DNA of 62,915 nucleotides, counting the filler, from Octopus bimaculoides (taxonomy: Eukaryota), in the NCBI RefSeq assembly GCF_001194135.2. It is 7 parts of 7 records of this genome, joined end to end, with 100 filler letters (N's around TTAATTAATTAA, not from the genome) between each part and the next. Parts side by side here need not be neighbours in the genome. Positions count along the whole stretch, not along the records: positions 45,682 to 56,959 come from NC_069010.1; 6 more parts are not named here. One strand, written 5' to 3'. Every line of letters begins with the position of its first letter. Positions within the stretch are counted from its first letter, which is position 1. The notes below the pieces were generated by a model. That model made no database searches. It saw only the letters and a program-made list of their open reading frames with translations, and was not told where the DNA came from. This document shows positions 4,446-56,959 of this stretch, one piece after another. The position numbers and the translations under genes are program-made.

Positions 4446-5132
4446 TGTGTGTTATGATAATTTATAGGATATAATCTTATATAAACCCAACTAACAATTA
4501 AAGATGGAGAAGAGAAGATGTTAAAAGTTTTACAAAATTTTGATCTATGCGTACGATCGTTTGAAATGATAACACCATCAACATATAAAAAAACATGAAA
4601 AAAAAATTAATTATAATTATAATTAAATTAATTTAATAACGTATTTCCATTCTCCTCAGTGCAAAAAAAAAATGGAGAAAACATCAGGAAAGTTAGTAAC
4701 AGAAGAATATTACAGGAGGCCACATTGAGTCTGTGTCGCATAACTCAATCGGATATTCATAAATTGATTGTGAAAGATGAAATATAACCTAACAATGTTC
4801 TTATATTTCACCTTTCACAATCAATTTATGAATATCCGATTGAGTAATGCGACACGGACTCAATGTGGTCTTCTGTAATATTCTTCTGTTACTGACTTTC
4901 CTCATGTTTCTCCATCTTTTGCACTGAGGAGAATGGTAATACGTAATTAAACTAAATTAATTTAATTATAATTATAATTAATTTAATTTTTCCATGTTTC
5001 TTACATATTGGTGTTATCATTTGAAACGATCGTATGCATGGATTAAACTTTTCTAAAACATTTAACATCTCCTCTACTCCAACTTTAATTGTGTTTATAT
5101 AGGATTATATCCTATAAATGCTCATAACACAC
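4446..5132. repeat. Long foldback palindrome (~340-bp arms, ~12-nt loop)
   Basis: 4446-4788 is the reverse complement of 4801-5132 with scattered mismatches and indels. Confidence 0.95.
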
Positions 5133-5471
5133 TTTATACTTGTTAAATTGTCATATTTTTTAATGAATACTTACGTTAGTAAGCTACAATTTTAATATGA
5201 AATCTAACTTTGGACACCCCAAAGCAAAAATGGTCTAATTGAACTCAACCTTTTCTCATGTATNNNNNNNNNNNNNNNNNNNNNNNNNNNNNNNNNNNNN
5301 NNNNNNNTTAATTAATTAANNNNNNNNNNNNNNNNNNNNNNNNNNNNNNNNNNNNNNNNNNNNTATATATATATATGTATATATATATGTATATATATAT
5401 GTATATATATATGTATATATATATGTATATATATATGTATATATATATGTATATATATATATGTATGTATG

Positions 5472-45681: not shown

Positions 45682-45767
<86 letters not shown>

Positions 45768-46639
45768 ATGTCAACTCTGTTATTCTTTCGACCAGCAATG
45801 ACTGATTTTATTAGAAGAATATATACAAACAGGAGTACCAGATGGGGCTTGAAACACATCCCCTCATATATAGAGAGCAGTGGCCATGCTGGGGCATCGC
45901 TTTGAAGGGTTTAGTTGGGTAAAATAACCACAGCACATAGGTTTTTTTTTGTTGTTTTTTTTTAAGCCTGGTACTTATTTTATCAGACTCTTTTGCTGAA
46001 CCACTAAGTTACAGGAATGTAAACAAACCAACACCAGTNNNNNNNNNNNNNNNNNNNNNNNNNNNNNNNNNNNNNNNNNNNNNNNNNNNNNNNNNNNNNN
46101 NNNNNNNNNNNNNNNNNNNNNNNNNNNNNNNNNNNNNNGGGTTGCCAATTTACATTAATAAAAAAAATAATAATAATTTCAAACTGGGTAGGAATTGAAA
46201 CCAACAATTTTAATCTAAATTTTAACAGCGTGTGATTAGAGTGGTTTCCCTTGATACTAAAAAACTTGTTTTTAAAAATCATTTTTTGAACCATTGTTTA
46301 AAGAACATTTTCTATTACTTCCAGTCTTGTATGTAAATGCGTTTATGTCTATACATGCATGCATACATACATACATATATATTATTTTATTCTTCTAATT
46401 TTTTACTTGTTTCAGTCATTTGACTGCGGCCATGCCGGAGCATCGCCTTGAATGGATTTTAATCAAACAAGTTAACCTGAGGAGTTGTTTTTTTTTTTAG
46501 ACTAGTATCATTCTTTCTCTTTCTCTCTCTCTTTCCCACTCTCTCTCTCTCTCTCTCTCTGTCTCTCTGCAATATAGGGGTAGTTTATCCTGTTCAGGCC
46601 ATATTATTAGCATTATTCTGCGATTGAGAATTTTAAAAA

Positions 46640-46777
46640 ATCATTTCTTTAACTTTCTAAAAGACATCTCAATGCTTCTAAAAGCAAACATCTGACAATG
46701 ACGCTGTAGGAAGTTTCTTGGAGTCCCAAACAAAAGAGTTCTTCTACGCCGGGATAATGGCACTTCAGCACCACTGG
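46640..46777 (+). mobile_element. mariner transposase C-terminal fragment
   Basis: FLESQTKEFFYAGIMALQHHW matches the mariner FF..GI.ALQH.W motif. Confidence 0.65.
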
Positions 46778-47022
46778 NNNNNNNNNNNNNNNNNNNNNNN
46801 NNNNNNNNNNNNNNNNNNNNNNNNNNNNNNNNNNNNNNNNNNNNNNNNNNNNNNNNNNNNNNNNNNNNNNNNNNNNNNNNNNNNNNNNNNNNNNNNNNNN
46901 NNNNNNNNNNNNNNNNNNNNNNNNNNNNNNNNNNNNNNNNNNNNNNNNNNNNNNNNNNNNNNNNNNNNNNNNNNNNNNNNNNNNNNNNNNNNNNNNNNNN
47001 NNNNNNNNNNNNNNNNNNNNNN

Positions 47023-47094
<72 letters not shown>

Positions 47095-47238
47095 ACACGC
47101 ATACAGAGATACATACATATATATATACTAATCAATACTGCTACTTTATTTTAATGACCCCCATAAAGGTGAAATGCATTTTTGACTTTGGCAGGAATTG
47201 AACTAAGAAAGAGCACTGTCACAACATGGACAACTTAC

Positions 47239-47421
47239 CTTTGGTCCCGATGTAATGATTGTTGTTCAACTTGATTTTGGTCAACCAAATGAGTAAGATG
47301 TACTCCAGGAAGAGTTTGTCACCCTTGGCTATATCGGTCAGCTGATCAGTGAGTTGGTCAAGTGGCCTGAGTGTGATAGACTGGACGGTGAACGAAGATG
47401 GTTGCGGTGGTTGTACAAAGC
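47239..47421 (-). CDS. Exon f: GFVQPPQPSSFTVQSITLRPLDQLTDQLTDIAKGDKLFLEYILLIWLTKIKLNNNHYIGTK (degenerate catalytic-loop region)
   Basis: Acceptor ccttttttttcccag|, donor AAG|GTAAGT, 183 nt (phase 1 to 1), fully open. Aligns by eye with FAM20 'IFDFLMGNMDRHHY'. Confidence 0.85.
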
Positions 47422-47469
47422 CTGGGAAAAAAAAGGTTGAACATGAGAATGGTATGGTGAAAAAAGAAC

Positions 47470-47639
47470 AGTATGGTGGTGGTGGTAGTAGTGATGGCAG
47501 TTGTAGTCGTAGCGATGTTGGCAGTAGTGGTGGTGATGGCCACGATGATGGTACTCTCGGGAATTACAACGATGATGGTGATGGTGGTGACAGAGGAGCA
47601 GTAGCATTACTTTTGAGGATGGTATTGGTGGGAGTGCAT

Positions 47640-47676
<37 letters not shown>

Positions 47677-47940
47677 AAGAGATGTGGTAGTAGTGGTGGT
47701 AATAGAGAGCATATGATGGAGGGGTGATGGTGATGGCAGTTGTGGTGGTAGCAGTAGTGAGGATGGTGTTGGTGGAGATTGTGGTGGTGGTGGTGGAATG
47801 GTATGTAAAACAAAAAAAAAAAAAAAANNNNNNNNNNNNNNNNNNNNNNNNNNNNNNNNNNNNNNNNNNNNNNNNNNNNNNNNNNNNNNNNNNNNNNNNN
47901 NNNNNNACCACCACCACCACCACCACCACCACCACCACCA
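47470..47940. repeat. Compound (GGT/GAT/AGT)n low-complexity tract inside the intron between exons e and f
   Basis: Seen directly. Confidence 0.9.
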
Positions 47941-47969
47941 CCCTCCATGTCTGCAAGTCGGTCACTCAC

Positions 47970-48093
47970 CTTCTATGGAACCATCAGCGCCAGCGAAGTC
48001 CTGCAACTGTTGCAAATGCTGCTTGTTCTTGGTGATGACTTGTAGAGTTGAAGCGGTCAGAACCATTTTGGACACTGGGGGTGTATGATACAG
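47970..48093 (-). CDS. Exon e: LYHTPPVSKMVLTASTLQVITKNKQHLQQLQDFAGADGSIE
   Basis: Acceptor tctttgttttcag|, donor AAG|GTGAGT, 124 nt (phase 0 to 1). Completes LDRLLG-L..TPPV (FAM20C 'RRVPPVAGR'). GSIEG resembles FAM20C 'DQIEGSL'. Confidence 0.9.
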
Positions 48094-48459
48094 CTGAAAA
48101 CAAAGACAGCAGTCAACATTATTATACACACATAGCATATATATACATACATACACATACATGTATATATACATCATCGTCATCATCTAGAGTCTCTTTC
48201 TGTGCTGGCATGGGTTGGACGGTTTGACGCAGAGCTGGCTAGCAGCGAGCCATCCAGACCCCCAGCTGTCTGTTTTGGGAAGGGTTTCTGTGGCTGGATG
48301 CCCTTCCTAATGCCAACCACTTCACAGAATGAGCTGGGTGCTTTTTACGTGCCACCAGCATGGGTGTGTTTATGCAACACTGACACAGGTACTTTCGAAG
48401 TGGCACCCGAAGGGACAAGCCTGTATAAACACACCAACATTGGTTGTCAAATGATACAT

Positions 48460-48490
<31 letters not shown>

Positions 48491-49292
48491 CAACAGGCTT
48501 CTTTCTGTTTCCATGTATCAAATCCACTCACAAGACTTTGGTTGGGCCAAGGCTACAGTGGAAGACACTTACCCAAGGTGCCATGCAGTGGGACTGAACC
48601 CGGGACCATGTGGTTGGGAAACAAGCTTCTTATTTCTTTATTGCCCACAAGGGGCTAAACATAGAGGGGACAAACAAGGACAGACAAAGGGATTAAGTCG
48701 ATTACATCGATCCCAGTACGCAACTGGTACTTAATTTATCGACCCCCGAAAGGATGAAAGGCAAAGNNNNNNNNNNNNNNNNNNNNNNNNNNNNNNNNNN
48801 NNNNNNNNNNNNNNNNNNNNNNNNNNNNNNNNNNNNNNNNNNNNNNNNNNNNNNNNNNNNNNNNNNNNNNNNNNNNNNNNNNNNNNNNNNNNNNNNNNNN
48901 NNNNNNNNNNNNNNNNNNNNNNNNNNNNNNNNNNNNNNNNNNNNNNNNNNNNNNNNNNNNNNNNNNNNNNNNNNNNNNNNNNNNNNNNNNNNNNNNNNNN
49001 NNNNNNNNNNNNNNNNGCTAACAAGCTTCTTACCACACAGCCATGCCTGCACCAATATGTGTGTGTGTGTGTGTGTGTGTACATGTGGGGATGTATTAGA
49101 AAGAGCATCCAGTCATAGAAACCATACCGGAGTTGACAACAGAGTTTGATGCAGACCTCTGGTTCATCAGCTTTTGTCAAACCATTCAGCCCATGCTAGC
49201 ATGCGAAGACGATGGAAGAAGATGACGATGACGATGATGACGATGACAAGGATGAGATATTGTAAAAAAACATGGACAGATTGAAACCTTAC

Positions 49293-49525
49293 CCCTAAGA
49301 GCCTGTCCAGCTTATAGACAATCATGCTACCCACATAGGATGATTTGCTGTTTTGCTGTCCCTTAAACACCACGGTGCCCATATGAGCCCCTTTTTCAGG
49401 GGATATAGGTTCGGAAAGATCGGTCCAGTGGAGATTGAGGAGGAACTGTCCGGTGCTGCTCACCTCAAACGCTCTGTCAAGTGTGGCATGATGCATCATG
49501 GTTAACCATTGGCTTTCTGTAATTC
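49293..49525 (-). CDS. Exon d: N-lobe of a FAM20/four-jointed/FAM198-type kinase fold (...GTVVFKGQQNSKSSYVGSMIVYKLDRLLG)
   Basis: Acceptor ctctccgtctgcag|, donor GGG|GTAAGG, 233 nt (phase 1 to 0). FK and YKLDRLLG correspond to the FAM20C 'FKP...AFHLDRILDF' and FAM198 'AFHLDRILGL' motifs. Confidence 0.9.
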
Positions 49526-50560
49526 CTGCAGACGGAGAGAATAGAGAGAGAGATTATCATATATTATTTACATACATTCACACACACACATCATCATCAT
49601 CATCATCATCATCATCGTTTAACGTCCGCTTTCCATGCTAGCATGGGTTGGACGACTTGACTGAGGACTGGTGAAACCGGATGGCAACACCAGGCTCCAA
49701 TCTAAATTTGGCAGAGTTTCTACAGCTGGATGCCCTTCCTAACGCCAACCACTGAGAGAGTGTGGTGGGTGCTTTTACGTGTCACCCGCACGAAAACGGC
49801 CACGCTCGAAATGGTGTCTTTTATGTGCCACCCGCACAAGAGCCAGTCCAGGGGCACTGGCAACGATCTCGCTTGAAAACCCTACANNNNNNNNNNNNNN
49901 NNNNNNNNNNNNNNNNNNNNNNNNNNNNNNNNNNNNNNNNNNNNNNNNNNNNNNNNNNNNNNNNNNNNNNNNNNNNNNNNNNNNNNNNNNNNNNNNNNNN
50001 NNNNNNNNNNNNNNNNNNNNNNNNNNNNNNNNNNNNNNNNNNNNNNNNNNNNNNNNNNNNNNNNNNNNNNNNNNNNNNNNNNNNNNNNNNNNNNNNNNNN
50101 NNNNNNNNNNNNNNTATATATATATATATATATATATATCAAACCATGCCAAAACTGACCCCACCAGAGCTGGTGCACTCAGGCCACTCCGCAGGTAGTT
50201 GCTGTTTGGAAGGGCGTCCAGCTATGAAAACCATCCCAAAACAGACACAGAAGTACGGTGTAGGCTTCTGCCTGGTCATCTCTCTTGTCAAACCGTCCAA
50301 CCCATGCCAGCATGGAAAGCAGGTGTTAAATGATGATGATAATGAGACGTATATATGCGCAGAGAGAGGGAGAGGATGATGATGATCTCAGGGAAGAAAT
50401 GGGGGTGGCTTACTGTCACATCCAAAGACGTGCCCTGAGCCATGCAAATGAAATTTCTAGCAATTACCATGGTCTTTGGTGTCGTCAGCAGTGAAGGTGA
50501 TGTCATGTGACCCGGATTTGAAACTCTGAGTTCTTTAATGACAACTTACAGATTGTCCTA

Positions 50561-50599
<39 letters not shown>

Positions 50600-50934
50600 T
50601 ATGGTTAACAAAAGCCAGGATGTGTGGCATTCAGTTACTCAATAAATGAAAAACGCATTAAATACAAGGAGCAATAGATACATAGTCAGACAGACAGATA
50701 GAAAGAGAGACAGACAGATAGATAGATAGATACACAGACAGACCAGAAGGTAGATAGACAGACTGACAGACAGATAGAAAGAGAGACTGACAGATAGATA
50801 GATGGATGGATAGACAGACAGACAGGTAAGTAGCCAAACAAGGAGAGAGAGAGAGAGAAGGGACAGACAGACAAATAGATAGATAGAACAGGAAGTTAGA
50901 GGAGACAAGGAGAGAGCGAGAAAAGTGAACAAAC

Positions 50935-51180
50935 CTCGTAGTCCAATGTGGTGCCTGAGTCTCTTCTCCCTGATATTTCTGGCCACCTGGTGGACAGACT
51001 GACTACGAGACACACAATCGACCGTGTTGAATCCATGGACAACCGGGGTCATTGGTGCCGGGTGGTTGTTGCTTTTACGACGACTGCCCAGCAGGCTGGA
51101 GACTTTGATGAAGAACGTGGCACCAGTGTTCCGGTGAATGGTGGACTTGGACGAGTTCTTGAAGATTACTGTCAGCAAGG
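50935..51180 (-). CDS. PKDCC: PKDCC-like exon c: end of the PKDCC tail (LLTVIFKNSSKSTIHRNTGATFFIK) followed by a read-through linker ending REKRLRHHIGLR
   Basis: Acceptor tttccttctttcag|, donor GAG|GTTTGT, 246 nt (phase 1 to 1). The first 25 aa parallel the vertebrate terminal 'LVFFKTG..QVVPD..KTTYVK'. No stop codon follows. Confidence 0.85.
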
Positions 51181-51214
51181 CTGAAAGAAGGAAAAAGAAA
51201 GCAATCAAACATTA

Positions 51215-51670
51215 ATAATAATAATAATAATAATCCTTTCTATTATAGGCACAAAGCCCAAAATTTAGGGGGATAATTGATTATATCAATCCACAGTACT
51301 CAACTGGTACTTAATTTATCAACCCCTTGGCAGAATTTGAACTCAGAACATGACGGTAGACAAAATACCACTAAGCATTTTGCCCGGTGTGCTAACGATT
51401 CTGCCATCTCACCGCCTTAATAATAATAATAATAATAATAATAATCCTTTTTACTACAGGCACAAGGCCTGAAATTTTTGAGGAAGGGACAAGTTGATTA
51501 CATCAACCCCAGTGTTTCACTGGTACTTTATTGTCCCTGAAAGCATAAAAGACAAAGTCAACCTCAGTGGGATTTGAACTCTGAATGTAGCGATGGGGAA
51601 AATGCCGCTAACCCTTTCCTCCAGTGTGCTCACAATTCTGGCAGCTCACCGTCTTAATAATAATAATAAT
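51215..51670 (-). mobile_element. Two tandem family B SINEs embedded in (TAA)n
   Basis: Each unit ends ccgcctt/ccgtctt next to taataat runs. Confidence 0.85.
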
Positions 51671-51908
51671 AATAGTAATAGTTTCAAATATGTGTTTATG
51701 GATGTTTGAAGATAACCAAACCAAATTTTCATCATTTTGAGTCACTCACCCAATGAGTAATTCTGCCAAATTTGGTGAAAATCCGTTCAGCCGTTTTCCA
51801 GGAAATTTGCAAACACACAGACAAAGACAAGTGATTACTATACCCTGCTTTTGCATATGCCCGCAGGGTAAGAAATCAAGAAAGAACAAAGAACCGTTTG
51901 TGACTCAC

Positions 51909-52101
51909 TTTTTTCATCGGGCTGTCCGGAGAGGATGACAAAAGCCTTGCAGACAGGATCTTGGGTGCATATGAGCTTGGCATGGGAGACATTGTAGGCT
52001 GTCTTCACACAACCCCATGAGGCACGAGAGAATGGACACGTATAATCAAAGATGCCAGGAATGTTCGAAGAATTGTAGCGGAAATAACGGACATCGTTAT
52101 C
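51909..52101 (-). CDS. PKDCC: PKDCC/VLK-like exon b: Cys-containing C-terminal (PAN/apple-like) domain, DNDVRYFRYNSSNIPGIFDYTCPFSRASWGCVKTAYNVSHAKLICTQDPVCKAFVILSGQPDEK
   Basis: Acceptor tctcctgcag|, donor AA|GTGAGT, 193 nt (phase 0 to 1). Cys spacing and motifs (IP..DY.C, GC...yN...A..C.....C.AFV) match the vertebrate PKDCC tail as I recall it ([36 protein letters not shown]). Confidence 0.9.
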
Positions 52102-54104
52102 CTGCAGGAGACAAAATGAAAGGAAAAGAATAATGAGATAAAGAAGAAAAATACAAAAAAAAAGAATTATGATTAAAAAATTCTGTTTTGTTTTGAAATT
52201 CCTGACAACTACCACCTCGGGCCACTGAATCCCATGGAGCAGAATAGGTTTTGGAGCAACAGAGCTTACTGTGGACAGAAACCAATTCTATCTTATTTTT
52301 TATTGTCTTTTTTTTTTTTTTCAGTATAGTTGTGTAGTTAAGAAGCTCATTTTGCGACCACATGGTTCTGGGTTCAGTCCCACTGCATGGCACCTTAGGA
52401 AAGTGTTGCTTCTACCTACCACAGCCCCAGGCCAACTAATGTCTCGTCAATGGATTTAGCAAATGGAAACTGTGTCAAAGCCTTCTGTACACACGCACAC
52501 ATGTATTCTACTCTTTTACTTGTTTCAGGCATTTGACTGCAGCCATGCTGGGGACTGTCACATTAAGTTGACAGTATACAACTACTTCATGGCAAAATTA
52601 TATAAAGTAAATATGTTGGGCCTCATTCCTTTCGAGCATTGGGCCTCACAAAGACAAAGTGGTTGTGTTCCTTTCAAGTGTTGGGTGACACGGAGGCAAT
52701 GACCAAGACCTTTGGCATTAAATCGTGCTTGAGAAGAAGACCCATCAAGCCGAGCAAAACCACAATCGTAGCAGATACCGGTGTCGCGCAAATTGGCACC
52801 CGTGCCAGTGGCATGTGAACACACCCCAGTGTCACACAAATGTCACCCATGCCGGTGGCACATAAAAGCACCCATTACACTCTCGGAGCGGTTGGCATTA
52901 GGAAGGGGCATCCAGCTGTAGAAAACCATGCCAAATCAGACTGGAGTCTGGTGCAGCCTTCCAGTCAATAGTCCAACCCATGCCAGCATGGACAACGGAT
53001 GTTAAATGATGATGATGATACTGATAATGATGGCAGCAAACTTATTTTACCAAATACTTCATTATTTTCAAAATTAATTAAAAATTTAAAAAAATGACAT
53101 ATTTCAACAGAAATATCCTAGTTTTATAATTCAGCTTCCTGATCTTTCCATCATCATCATCATCATCANNNNNNNNNNNNNNNNNNNNNNNNNNNNNNNN
53201 NNNNNNNNNNNNNNNNNNNNNNNNNNNNNNNNNNNNNNNNNNNNNNNNNNNNNNNNNNNNNNNNNNNNNNNNNNNNNNNNNNNNNNNNNNNNNNNNNNNN
53301 NNNNNNNNNNNNNNNNNNNNNNNNNNNNNNNNNNNNNNNNNNNNNNNNNNNNNNNNNNNNNNNNNNNNNNNNNNNNNNNNNNNNNNNNNNNNNNNNNNNN
53401 NNNNNNNNNNNNNNNNNNNNNNNNNNNNNNNNNNNNNNNNNNNNNNNNNNNNNNNNNNNNNNNNNNNNNNNNNNNNNNNNNNNNNNNNNNNNNNNNNNNN
53501 NNNNNNNNNNNNNNNNNNNNNNNNNNNNNNNNNNNNNNNNNNNNNNNNNNNNNNNNNNNNNNNNNNNNNNNNNNNNNNNNNNNNNNNNNNNNNNNNNNNN
53601 NNNNNNNNNNNNNNNNNNNNNNNNNNNNNNNNNNNNNNNNNNNNNNNNNNNNNNNNNNNNNNNNNNNNNNNNNNNNNNNNNNNNNNNNNNNNNNNNNNNN
53701 NNNNNNNNNNNNNNNNNNNNNNNNNNNNNNNNNNNNNNNNNNNNNNNNNNNNNNNNNNNNNNNNNNNNNNNNNNNNNNNNNNNNNNNNNNNNNNNNNNNN
53801 NNNNNNNNNNNNNNNNNNNNNNNNNNNNNNNNNNNNNNNNNNNNNNNNNNNNNNNNNNNNNNNNNNNNNNNNNNNNNNNNNNNNNNNNNNNNNNNNNNNN
53901 NNNNNNNNNNNNNNNNNNNNNNNNNNNNNNNNNNNNNNNNNNNNNNNNNNNNNNNNNNNNNNNNNNNNNNNNNNNNNNNNNNNNNNNNNNNNNNNNNNNN
54001 NNNNNNNNNNNNNNNNNNNNNNNNNNNNNNNNNNNNNNNNNNNNNNNNNNNNNNNNNNNNNNNNNNNNNNNNNNNNNNNNNNNNNNNNNNNNNNNNNNNN
54101 NNNN

Positions 54105-54330
54105 TCGAAAATCCTACGAAGGCCAGTCAGGCGGTACTGGCAACGGCCACGCTCAAAATGGTGCATCTCATGTGCCACCCGCACAAGAGCCAGTCCAGGG
54201 GCACTGGCAACGATCTCGCTCGAAAATCCTACGAAGGCCAGTCAGGCGGTACTGGCAACGGCCACGCTCAAAATGGTGTATTTTACGTGCCACCCGCACA
54301 AGAGCCAGTCAGGCGGTACTGGCAACAAAA
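54105..54330. repeat. 115-bp tandem repeat (two copies visible, continuing into a gap), internal region of the Meta-like SINE
   Basis: Unit starts tcgaaaatcc at 54105 and 54220. The same unit occurs at 49790-49886. Confidence 0.85.
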
Positions 54331-54772
54331 AAAAAAAACAATTTATGATAATAAGGTCAAAAGGGAATGAACAGAAACCGAAAAACCACAGCCAAATGCA
54401 TAACCGAGAACTACAGGTCTTAGAAATTTGCACCACATGCAGTAAACAGCATAACTAGATGCAAGTGCATGCGTATTACAGATGATGCATTACATATATG
54501 CAACAGCAACAAAACACTGCACACAAAGGTGCAGAGGACTATGCACCATAGAGCAGCAAAAGCATGCAACAAAAATTATAGGAATAATTCCTGGAATTCG
54601 GTGGGGACGGCGGGGGTGGGGTTCAAGTCAAATAACATCGACCCCCAAAAGGATGAAAGGCAAAGTCGACCTCAGTGGGAATTGAACTCAGAACGTAAAC
54701 ACGGACGAAATACCACTAAGAATTTTGCCCACCGTGCCTACAATTTTGCCAGCTCACAGCCTTAATAATAAC

Positions 54773-54809
<37 letters not shown>

Positions 54810-54814
54810 TGTTC

Positions 54815-55150
54815 CTCTAAAAGAAATGGAGAAACTTTCAAAATACAAAGACCTGGAAATAGAGGTAACTCGAATGTGGAACCTAAAAACAGAAACAATT
54901 CCTATCATAGTGGGTGCCTTAGGTATAATAAAAAAATATTCAGACAAATACATAACAAAAACACCAGGACTTACAAATATATATAACATACAAAAAATTG
55001 CACTACTGGGCACTGCACACATCCTACGCAAAACACTTTCAATTCAGTAACCATAAGAGCACCACAGCAAACCACAGCACATACCCAAGGCGCACAGAGC
55101 TGTGCTCGGTAGTGAAGTGAAAGCACGTTATAAAAATAAAACTACTGAAT
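54815..55150 (+). mobile_element. 5'-truncated R4/Dong-like LINE 3' end flanked by (TAA)n
   Basis: EKLSKYKDLEIEVTRMW...IPIIVGALG...IQKIALLGTAHILRK* followed by a UTR. Confidence 0.9.
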
Positions 55151-55829
55151 AATAATAATAATAATAATAATTCCTATCATAAAACTACTGAATACTCATC
55201 ATCATCATCATCATCATCGTTGTCGTTTAACGTCCGCTTTCCATGCTAGCATGGGTTGAATGATTTGACTGAGGACTGGTGAAACCAGATGGCAACACCA
55301 GGCTCCAATCTAAATTNNNNNNNNNNGATTTGACTGAGGACTGGTGAAACCAGATGGCAACACCAGGCTCCAATCTAAATTTGGCAGAGTTTCTACAGCT
55401 GGATGCCCTTCCTAACGCCAACCACTCAGAGAGTGCAGTGGGTGCCTTTTTACGTGCCACCCACACGAAGGCCAGACAGGCGGTACTGGCAACGGTACTG
55501 AATACTAATAATAATAATCCTTTCTACTAAAGGCACAAGGCCTGAAATTTGGGGGAGGGGACCAGTTGATTACATCAACCACAGTATTCAACTGGTACTT
55601 AATTTATCGACACCGAAAGGATGAAAAGCCACTAAGCATTTTCCCCAGGGTGCTAATGATTCTGCCAGCTCACTTCCTTTATTGTCGTTGGCGTCCTTTT
55701 GTCTCAGGAGACAATGATGGAGTTGCACATAAACTAATCCAGTCTGGTTTTTTACATATCATGTCTTCTCCTTTGCGCAGGCCTGGGCTAGATGTAAGAA
55801 AACCCTGGGTAGCCCAATCACCATGCACT

Positions 55830-56470
55830 GCTCTCTCACTCAATAATAATGACAATAGGTCCACGAATTGGAGGGTCAACCTTAGGAATGAGCATGTGTC
55901 TCCACTGCGCTGTATTTGTAACAGAGTGGATGAAACCATTGCCCACATTACATACAAATACCCTAGACTTGCCCAGAACTACTACGAGTTGTGGTGAAAT
56001 GATGAGATGGCAAAAGTGCTACTTAGGAAACTGTGCAAAAAGTGGGGTCTAGGGAAAGACAAGATGTAACATGAAGGCGGCGATCAGGCAGAATCGTTAG
56101 CACGTCGGGCGAAATGCTTAGCGGTATTTCGCCTGCCGTTACGTTCTGAGTTCAAATTCCGCCGAGGTCGACTTTGCCTTTCATCCTTTCGGGGTCGATA
56201 AATTAAGTATCAGTTACGCACTGGTATCGATGTAATCGACTTAATCCCTTTATCTGTCCTTGTTTGTCCCCTCTATGTTTAGCCCCTTGTGGGCAGTAAA
56301 GAAAATAAGATGTAACATGAGCACATACTGCAGAGAGTGGCAGAGTCGGAGAGCTGCAAAACCCGCTGGGATTTCCCAAGCCAAACAGATAAGGTGGTAG
56401 AGCATAAAAGACCAGACCTAGTGGTGGTCAACAAGATGCACCAGATGTGCTATATAAACCCAGGGTTAAA

Positions 56471-56502
<32 letters not shown>

Positions 56503-56720
56503 TTGGAAGGCACCAAGAGGATATAAAAGGAAATCGGAAGAGAGTGCCCAGAAGAACTGTTACAAAAGGTTGGCCTCCTTGGCACGGCCAGAATAATTAG
56601 GAGAATATTGGATGGTTGGAAAGAACAGATAGCATGGTACCATGAGCTGCAGGCAGCAAACCTGCTATGCATGCAAGACTCCAGGAGTTCCAACAAAACT
56701 TGAGATAAAAAGAATAAATA
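55830..56720 (+). mobile_element. R4/Dong-like remnant carrying a nested family B SINE (56075-56306, 14-bp TSD aagatgtaacatga)
   Basis: HITYKYPRLAQ, WDFPSQTDKVVEHKRPDLVVV and LLQKVGLLGTARII motifs. TSD at 56061-56074 and 56307-56320. Confidence 0.85.
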
Positions 56721-56760
56721 ATAATAAATGATAACAACAACAACAACAATAATAATAATG

Positions 56761-56805
<45 letters not shown>

Positions 56806-56834
56806 GCAGAAAACAAAACAAAAGAGACAAAAAC

Positions 56835-56959
56835 CTTCCATTCCATAATTTCTTCACCTCCGACAGAGTTCCCAGCAGCATCGCCACCATGGTCTGACTG
56901 GGAATTGAACCCTTGCATCTGGGCATTGTTTTTCTGATAGTGTCGATGGCGACCACTTC
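56835..56959 (-). CDS. PKDCC: PKDCC/VLK-like gene, exon a (5' part lost in gap): end of kinase domain plus linker, (R)SGRHRHYQKNNAQMQGFNSQSDHGGDAAGNSVGGEEIMEWK
   Basis: Open frame ending at donor AAG|GTTTTT in phase 0, matching the next exon. RSG resembles the 'YRSG' that closes the vertebrate PKDCC kinase domain. Truncated by the N-gap at 56960. Confidence 0.7.

Follow-up and report, generated by a model that had tools for sequence, protein, structure and literature searches.

Six octopus exons join a PKDCC-type tail to a FAM20-like module in a probable long PKDCC gene

Secretory-pathway kinases usually fall into two distant groups that are encoded by separate genes, one comprising FAM20, FJX1 and GASK1 and the other PKDCC, FAM69 and DIA1. 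A locus of Octopus bimaculoides raises the question whether a member of each group can be joined in one polypeptide. The locus lies in a 62,915-nt stretch of assembly GCF_001194135.2, hereafter the window; the gene-bearing piece, positions 45682-56959 of the window, comes from NC_069010.1. An initial annotation of this piece had proposed a gene that encodes, in this order, the kinase of PKDCC (vertebrate lonesome kinase, VLK), a Cys domain, a linker and a FAM20-like fold. The piece itself was found to encode a linker, a PAN/apple-like tail and about two thirds of a FAM20-like module. We regard it as the middle part, six exons long, of the octopus orthologue of an uncharacterised but conserved metazoan gene, here called long PKDCC, and put the probability of this explanation as a whole at about 0.8.

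Exon structure and the join within exon 3

All stop-free segments of the piece were extracted and the junctions were then read. Six exons on the minus strand (Table 1) join through canonical AG/GT sites, with 3′ phases of 0, 1, 1, 0, 1 and 1, into one open frame, just as the initial annotation had described; only its length of about 390 residues had to be corrected to a measured 367 codons. The other two frames contain 15 and 16 stops. A polypyrimidine tract precedes the AG of each internal acceptor, and each donor begins with GT (GTGAGT, GTTTGT, GTAAGG, GTGAGT and GTAAGT, with GTTTTT at exon 1). The structure is confirmed by public models: the joined peptide is 100% identical to UniProt A0A0L8FJ42 of O. 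bimaculoides over 354 residues and 95% identical to the O. sinensis protein LOC115231021. Exons 2-6 correspond without a break to residues 4-331 of the O. sinensis protein and to residues 503-820 of P0082, the protein of a cephalopod-type transcript. Because of this unbroken colinearity, no coding exon is concealed in the assembly gaps, none of which touches an exon. Between the two octopus species exons 2-6 show a synonymous divergence (dS) of 0.18 and a nonsynonymous divergence (dN) of 0.027; the resulting dN/dS of 0.15 indicates real coding sequence under purifying selection. The LYHTPP motif in exon 5 is nearly invariant in the family. On the genomic contig P0003 of a related species, the exon 2 homologue of P0082 lies between non-coding flanks; its 3′ boundary coincides with that of the octopus exon, and the 5′ boundaries differ by no more than a few codons. 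The octopus gene extends over more than 33 kb and has at least seven introns.

The join lies inside exon 3. This exon alone encodes the final strands of the PKDCC tail (LLTVIFKN...ATFFIK) and the conserved first helix of the module (C..REKRL..GLRG) with no stop between them, and the fusion is therefore independent of splicing. The C..RE.RLM..G motif of this helix is conserved in all members of the family, including proteins of Ptychodera in which the module stands alone.

Uninterrupted full-length open reading frames (ORFs) were verified for P0082 (929 residues) and P0009 (859 residues) on contigs of 4.3 and 3.3 kb, respectively. The other full-length members lie on contigs of 3.2-4.9 kb, from which we infer that each represents a single transcript. 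Two full-length cephalopod-type transcripts encode proteins of 929 and 951 residues that are 54% identical to the octopus sequence, and an ORF labelled complete in the transcriptome of the sponge Oscarella pearsei encodes the full long form. The fusion inside exon 3 and the continuous ORFs of other species argue against a pair of adjacent genes, an explanation that the initial annotation had itself considered, and bear out its claim that two secretory-kinase groups meet in one polypeptide.

The amphioxus isoforms provide a further view of the join. Isoform X2 (P0073, 819 residues, compared with P0017) skips a 56-residue exon that corresponds to the N-lobe sheet of the module. The skipped exon starts right after ...RLMRDCGW, which is the position of the octopus exon 3/4 boundary. 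Other amphioxus isoforms (649 and 548 residues) are N-terminally truncated within the kinase domain and would have no signal peptide. A vertebrate-like short PKDCC among the short amphioxus isoforms was considered and rejected: all of them keep the module and are either truncated at the N-terminus or deprived of an internal exon.

Table 1. Features of the O. bimaculoides piece (positions in the window)
Feature	Position	Strand	Description
Exon 1	56957-56835	-	Low-complexity linker (...SGRHRHYQKNNAQMQGFNSQSDHGGDAAGNSVGGEEIMEWK); phase 0 donor GTTTTT; frame open at the piece edge
Exon 2	52101-51909	-	First part of the PAN/apple-like Cys domain, the PKDCC C-terminal tail (DNDVRYFRYNSSNIPGIFDYTCPFSRASWGCVKTAYNVSHAKLICTQDPVCKAFVILSGQPDEK)
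Exon 3 (fusion exon)	51180-50935	-	Last strands of the PKDCC tail (LLTVIFKNSSKSTIHRNTGATFFIK), 30-residue linker, first conserved Cys and helices of the module (DCVSRSQSVHQVARNIREKRLRHHIGLR)
Exon 4	49525-49293	-	FAM20-like N-lobe: beta sheet, beta-3 motif TVVFKGQQ, alpha-C helix ending KLDRLLG
Exon 5	48093-47970	-	FAM20-like module continued (LYHTPPVSKMVLTASTLQVITKNKQHLQQLQDFAGADGSIE)
Exon 6	47421-47239	-	Start of the C-lobe (FVQPPQ...DKLFLEYILLIWLTKIKLNNNHYIGTK); phase 1 donor GTAAGT
Gap, intron 1	53169-54104
Gap, intron 1	55317-55326		10 N; spanned by one SINE-like copy
Gap, intron 3	49887-50114
Gap, intron 4	48767-49016
Gap, intron 5	47828-47906
Repeat pair	49586-49776 and 55194-55449		Dispersed repeat
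Repeat pair	48633-48746 and 56191-56304		Dispersed repeat, inverted
SINE-like copies	51298-51443, 51535-51680, 54643-54788
Microsatellites	45682-45770, 47023-47100, 47907-47960, 50115-50140		(TA)n, (CA)n, GGT/ACC run
Tandem array	50655-50870		AGAC/AGAT-rich; starts about 65 nt downstream of exon 3
Intron 1 ORFs	54826-55050, 55566-55997	+	Presumed retroelement ORF fragments

The introns are crowded with microsatellites and dispersed repeats resembling short interspersed elements (SINEs). The dispersed repeats are 77-95% alike and occur in both orientations in introns 1-4, and microsatellites flank nearly every gap. These microsatellites and repeats probably explain the assembly gaps. If the donor of exon 3 were left unused, its frame would stay open for 97 more codons and encode a Leu/Ser/Cys-rich low-complexity tail; this stretch is not conserved as coding sequence in O. 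sinensis. Two ORFs on the plus strand of intron 1 may be fragments of a retroelement ORF (a Cys/His motif, C..C....ET..H, and an IPIIVGALG-type tail); Pfam gave no match for these intronic ORFs.

PKDCC-type relatives and the ends of the octopus gene

When the O. sinensis protein served as the query of an exhaustive HMMER scan, 67 proteins were found. About 15 cluster representatives have the size of a complete long PKDCC (about 860-995 residues), and their C-terminal approximately 430 residues align to the whole query. The N-terminal halves of the long relatives match PIP49_C, the Pfam model of the FAM69/PKDCC-type kinase (E values from 1e-13 to 2e-5), and start with a segment that is hydrophobic by eye. 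The long form was found in gastropods (Patella, Lottia, Haliotis, Aplysia, Elysia, Bulinus, Candidula, Babylonia and Bradybaena), bivalves (Ylistrum, Sinanodonta and Pinctada, with a partial model in Tegillarca), cephalopods (Octopus and the two transcripts mentioned above), cephalochordates (Branchiostoma), tunicates (Clavelina) and homoscleromorph sponges (Oscarella pearsei and Oscarella lobularis). Full-length members include XP_005099499 of Aplysia and XP_060086010 of Ylistrum. The search of invertebrates suggested in the initial annotation thus recovered the two-domain architecture in molluscs, amphioxus, a tunicate and sponges; the architecture is ancient and not specific to lophotrochozoans. 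This spread is consistent with a PKDCC branch that is older than the split of Bilateria and Cnidaria (PMC5896498). In their sources all members are named "uncharacterized", "hypothetical" or "FAM69 protein-kinase domain-containing".

PKDCC and FAM20 are treated as separate families, with no mention of a fused form, in two bioinformatics papers on FAM69/PKDCC (PMC3696010, PMC5896498), a paper on the structure and evolution of FAM20 (PMC5865150), a review (PMC7948968) and a paper on FAM20C (PMC3416761). The literature searched, which lay outside most subscription journals, contained no description of the fused form; a prior description is possible.

Parts of the architecture also occur separately. 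Ptychodera flava has three standalone modules with a type-II anchor, of 419-461 residues (P0028, P0029 and P0033, corresponding to XP_070554245, XP_070562900 and XP_070580687). A 470-residue protein from ENA (P0027) consists of a signal peptide, a PAN/apple-like domain and a FAM20-like module and has no PKDCC kinase, which shows that the unit of PAN domain and module also exists alone.

The first part of the long form is colinear with short PKDCC-type proteins. The long member of Ylistrum aligns with the short protein P0067 from the kinase domain to the end of the latter, ...TLWLRSP (E 7e-26), and P0067 also matches the octopus Cys domain. The human PKDCC sequence used here is provisional, and its matches are a lead that P0067 corroborates. 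P0082 matches it in the kinase (E 5e-20, 27% identity) and in the tail (E 2e-4), and the octopus tail encoded by exons 2-3 matches its residues 421-458 (E 0.002). The human sequence, which closes with ...TTYVKASG, ends where P0082 reads ...TLFIKVS, so that the end of a canonical short PKDCC corresponds to the octopus position ...ATFFIKVS. The statement of the initial annotation that vertebrate PKDCC stops after the tail agrees with both P0067 and the provisional human sequence. The long form equals a PKDCC with about 335 extra C-terminal residues. In a phmmer search, a full-length relative had no match among the PDB sequences, and no PKDCC-type structure was therefore found by sequence.

The assignment of the Cys domain in the tail as PAN/apple-like has moderate support. 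Four Cys residues are invariant in 13 members, and the profile of the domain matches the apple domains of factor XI with a whole-sequence E value of 8.6e-5, all four repeats being matched weakly. The Pfam model PAN_4 matches 4 of the 13 members, the best E value of 0.028 being below threshold. In the AlphaFold model the domain has five strands and one helix. Taken together, a long PKDCC would begin with an N-terminal signal anchor, followed by a PKDCC/VLK-type (PIP49_C) kinase with a Cys-rich insert, a variable low-complexity linker, the PAN/apple-like Cys domain, a short linker and a FAM20-fold module of about 310 residues. Such a protein would be of type II or secreted.

Of the order proposed in the initial annotation, the Cys domain, the linker and about two thirds of the module are present in the piece, whereas the kinase domain lies outside it: a tblastn search with full-length relatives as queries found exons 2-6 alone and no VLK kinase exon anywhere in 45682-56959. 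A match of human PKDCC at 51738-51812 (E 0.13) was attributed to chance, since it did not recur with the cephalopod-type protein. Orthologues and an upstream exon of O. sinensis suggest that the kinase domain is encoded upstream of the piece. In O. sinensis the orthologue of exon 1 (VCDQ01005897.1, about 4820-5389) has an open frame that reaches about 570 nt farther upstream and encodes an Asn/Gln/Asp-rich linker. Its 5′ part (PLKFSLRWYLKGHGSVYRPK...) is homologous (E 2e-7) to the stretch of P0082 that comes after the kinase domain, residues 383-446. The NCBI model of O. sinensis starts with MEWK inside this open exon, and the start Met of A0A0L8FJ42 is a Leu in O. sinensis. Three observations, namely the match of the upstream exon to the post-kinase linker, a frame that has not closed by the edge of the piece and a start Met that differs between the species, make both octopus models appear truncated at the 5′ end; the annotated start codons of both species are probably internal.

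The 3′ end of the gene is likewise missing. Exon 6 ends at a phase 1 GTAAGT donor, and the gene therefore continues beyond it. The tail GKLSML* of A0A0L8FJ42 (window 47222-47239) is a read-through of this donor into intron 6. In O. sinensis two more exons follow exon 6 (HVILLNGDRAF... to ...HGRKHVLY, 107 residues); tblastn did not find them in 45682-47238. A0A0L8FJ42 thus lacks its 3′ end and probably its 5′ end as well.

Two other explanations of the octopus exons were weighed. Gene predictors might have joined neighbouring PKDCC and FAM20-like genes whose exons are phase-compatible by chance, and indeed the octopus models are computational predictions, the second half contains no domain known to Pfam and the introns contain assembly gaps. 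Such an artefact is extremely improbable, as a single stop-free frame in exon 3 runs from the PKDCC tail into the start of the module, intronless full-length contigs exist in several species beside the complete Oscarella ORF, the architecture recurs in four phyla, octopus and amphioxus have the exon 3/4 boundary in common and a second gene would have no signal peptide of its own. It is more conceivable, though still unlikely, that the octopus gene is kinase-less: it would start at or near MEWK and encode only the PAN/apple-like domain and the FAM20-like module, the VLK kinase being absent or encoded by a separate gene. Several observations favour this alternative and weigh against the long form in octopus. 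The two public octopus models begin at or near MEWK; tblastn matches to kinase exons, both in the piece and in the O. sinensis contig with its 4.8 kb upstream of the model, are at chance level (E 2-3); P0027 is a natural kinase-free protein, and annotated amphioxus isoforms are truncated at the N-terminus. In addition, the two full-length transcripts are assigned to cephalopods from identity only. No separate octopus kinase fragment was among the matches listed, but these protein searches were of limited sensitivity and their outcome is not evidence of absence. On the other side, a Cys-rich secretory fold needs a signal peptide, which P0027 has and the octopus models lack; the open frame extends to the piece edge and, in O. 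sinensis, into sequence homologous to the post-kinase linker of P0082; the start Met is not shared by the two species; the O. sinensis contig simply stops 4.8 kb upstream of the model; and the closest relatives, at 54% identity, are full length and include the kinase. A long PKDCC whose kinase exons lie upstream of the piece remains the preferred explanation.

The FAM20-like module and its active site

Pfam was silent on the second module. The joined peptide and the octopus proteins P0002 and P0001 gave no match even at E <= 10, Fam20C (PF06702) included, so that the Pfam check proposed in the initial annotation (PIP49_C, FAM198, Fam20C) yielded nothing for the joined peptide; the standalone members had no match at E <= 0.1, neither to FAM198 nor to Fam20C. 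The family assignment was therefore drawn from profiles and structure. A profile of 16 modules was searched against all PDB sequences and found only FAM20 proteins, with E values from 1e-8 to 5e-5: FAM20B (5xom, 1e-8), FAM20A (7e-6), C. elegans Fam20 (1.4e-5) and FAM20C (about 4e-5). The next match had an E value of 1.3. The aligned stretches are the N-lobe (FAM20B VVFKPKR... against ..alFlaE...fhlaqlavyqLDRlLGLYktvP) and the last helix (V..CI..HG...V).

The AlphaFold model of P0002 without an alignment was not usable, with a predicted local distance difference test score (pLDDT) of 33. With an alignment of 10 relatives the pLDDT rose to 73.7, at a predicted template modelling score (pTM) of 0.68; the region of exon 4 forms strands at 164-206 and a helix at 211-226. 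In a Foldseek search of PDB with this model, ranks 1-27 were all FAM20A, FAM20B, FAM20C or Fam20 (E 2e-10 to 2e-7, probability 1.00, template modelling (TM) score 0.42-0.53), the top ranks including FAM20A, Hydra Fam20, zebrafish Fam20C and C. elegans Fam20. The next fold, PI4KII-alpha, followed at an E value of 8e-4. The expected FAM20-type fold of the C-terminal half was thus recovered by profile and by structure prediction alike. These comparisons support a FAM20-like module that would form a separate branch missed by the Pfam Fam20C and FAM198 models.

In Hydra Fam20, Lys133 and Asp152 form an ion pair. In C. elegans Fam20 the corresponding acid is Glu213, and the canonical alpha-C glutamate is Glu218 (PMC5865150). 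The acid is a Gln in the pseudokinase FAM20A (PMC5865150; see also PMC7948968). The corresponding positions were compared in 25 members, anchored on the invariant LDRLLG motif. The alpha-C glutamate is absent in all 25 (S, K, Q, Y, H, F or L; Ser in octopus). At the ion-pair acid, Glu is restricted to amphioxus, tunicate, Ptychodera and related members; octopus has Ser there. Cephalopods, Oscarella and Ptychodera have the beta-3 Lys, which most other molluscs have lost. The Asp of the H-F-x-A-D-x-A-F motif is common, with Asn or Gln in two cephalopod-type transcripts. The position of the DFG-like Asp is Asn in octopus, according to the second domain of the profile alignment, which is weak and not significant. 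Invariant positions of the module are mostly Cys, Gly, Pro and hydrophobic residues, a pattern more in keeping with a conserved scaffold than with an active site. As the alpha-C glutamate is missing in every member, the residues indicate that the module is probably a pseudokinase. The standalone Ptychodera proteins retain WFKV with the beta-3 Lys, GEKH/GERH with the ion-pair Glu and FDSDRAF with an Asp at the DFG-like position; they may therefore be active kinases of an undescribed branch.

The module could instead be an active atypical kinase with non-canonical residues, for example a sugar or protein kinase, which would make the whole protein a bifunctional secretory kinase. Some points speak for activity or against the assignment of the module as a FAM20-like pseudokinase. 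The AlphaFold model rests on only 10 sequences, with a TM score to FAM20 of about 0.45-0.53, and the alignment to FAM20 is secure in the N-lobe and weak in the catalytic loop and the DFG-like region. Atypical active sites such as those of POMK and FAM20A can still bind ATP or catalyse. Cephalopods retain the beta-3 Lys, as do Oscarella and Ptychodera, and deuterostome and standalone members retain more catalytic residues, among them the ion-pair acid; the Asp of H-F-x-A-D-x-A-F is widely conserved, and the module is under purifying selection. POMK (PMC5865150) is an example of a secretory kinase that was formerly regarded as inactive. However, no member has the alpha-C glutamate, the Lys and the acid are missing from most molluscs, octopus has neither acid and carries Asn at the DFG-like position, even the conserved Asp is replaced in the two cephalopod-type transcripts, and the invariant positions suggest a scaffold. 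We therefore consider an active module improbable, if less so than a kinase-less octopus gene, and prefer the pseudokinase.

Comparison with known systems and proposed mechanism

The closest counterpart of the first part is vertebrate PKDCC/VLK (SgK493), a secreted tyrosine kinase of the RESK/FAM69 group. It shares with the long relatives the PIP49_C-type kinase with its Cys-rich insert and, in the same order, the C-terminal Cys domain (DY.C...GC...C...C.AF...K...TT.[FY].K), the tail encoded by octopus exons 2-3. The canonical protein stops after this tail, whereas the long gene runs on, in the same exon, into the FAM20-fold module of about 310 residues.

Among the FAM20 proteins, FAM20A is the best structural match to the module (5wrr, Foldseek E 1.9e-10). 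Both share ...F.....LDR.LG..R/Y..PP and the C-terminal helix, and neither has the acidic residue for the Lys ion pair (PMC5865150, PMC7948968). Unlike FAM20A, the module lacks the alpha-C glutamate and is joined covalently to a PKDCC-group kinase, whereas FAM20A pairs in trans with its paralogue. Moreover, the module is only 12-16% identical to FAM20 structures, measures about 310 instead of about 400 residues and is missed by Pfam Fam20C. The active proteins FAM20B, FAM20C and the Fam20 of C. elegans and Hydra, of which FAM20B is the best profile match, have the same fold and, by eye, a shared Cys pattern around C.FP versus QCC and in the last helix, but their catalytic residues are not conserved in the module. 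FJX1 (four-jointed) and GASK1A/B (FAM198A/B) belong to the same FAM20-like superfamily, and the standalone Ptychodera proteins resemble them in size and layout, although the module matches neither the FAM198 nor the Fam20C model. The JH1 and JH2 domains of JAK likewise combine an apparently competent kinase with a degenerate kinase fold in one polypeptide. The two JAK folds, however, are paralogous canonical kinases and cytosolic, while those of long PKDCC come from two distant secretory-kinase groups, stand in the order kinase, PAN domain, pseudokinase, and are connected by a regulation that is only hypothesised.

By analogy, the tethered FAM20-fold pseudokinase would most likely regulate or scaffold the tyrosine kinase in cis. 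Within the secretory pathway it might activate the N-terminal tyrosine kinase allosterically, or serve as a dimerisation or substrate-docking unit, similar to FAM20A, which activates FAM20C in trans, and to JH2 acting on JH1 in JAK kinases. The PAN domain could be a connector or a ligand-binding element. That this mechanism is pure analogy with FAM20A/FAM20C and JAK counts against it. Vertebrate PKDCC would then be a derived, shortened form. A more far-reaching version is tentative: the ancestral animal VLK/PKDCC may have been a tandem secretory kinase-pseudokinase under cis control by a FAM20-fold module, tethered through the PAN domain, which was lost in vertebrates and of which the Ptychodera standalone proteins represent the free form. 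If so, vertebrate VLK may need an unrecognised FAM20-like partner in trans.

The gene joins a member of each secretory-kinase group in one polypeptide. The join is old, being found in homoscleromorph sponges, molluscs, amphioxus and a tunicate, and is absent from vertebrate PKDCC, the subject of all functional work. A0A0L8FJ42 and LOC115231021, the public octopus models, appear to be truncated fragments of this gene, and the relatives define a FAM20-like branch that Pfam misses. The results suggest that the "vertebrate lonesome kinase" may be the shortened form of a two-module enzyme, and they offer a directly testable parallel to FAM20A and FAM20C for the control of a kinase by a pseudokinase in the secretory pathway.

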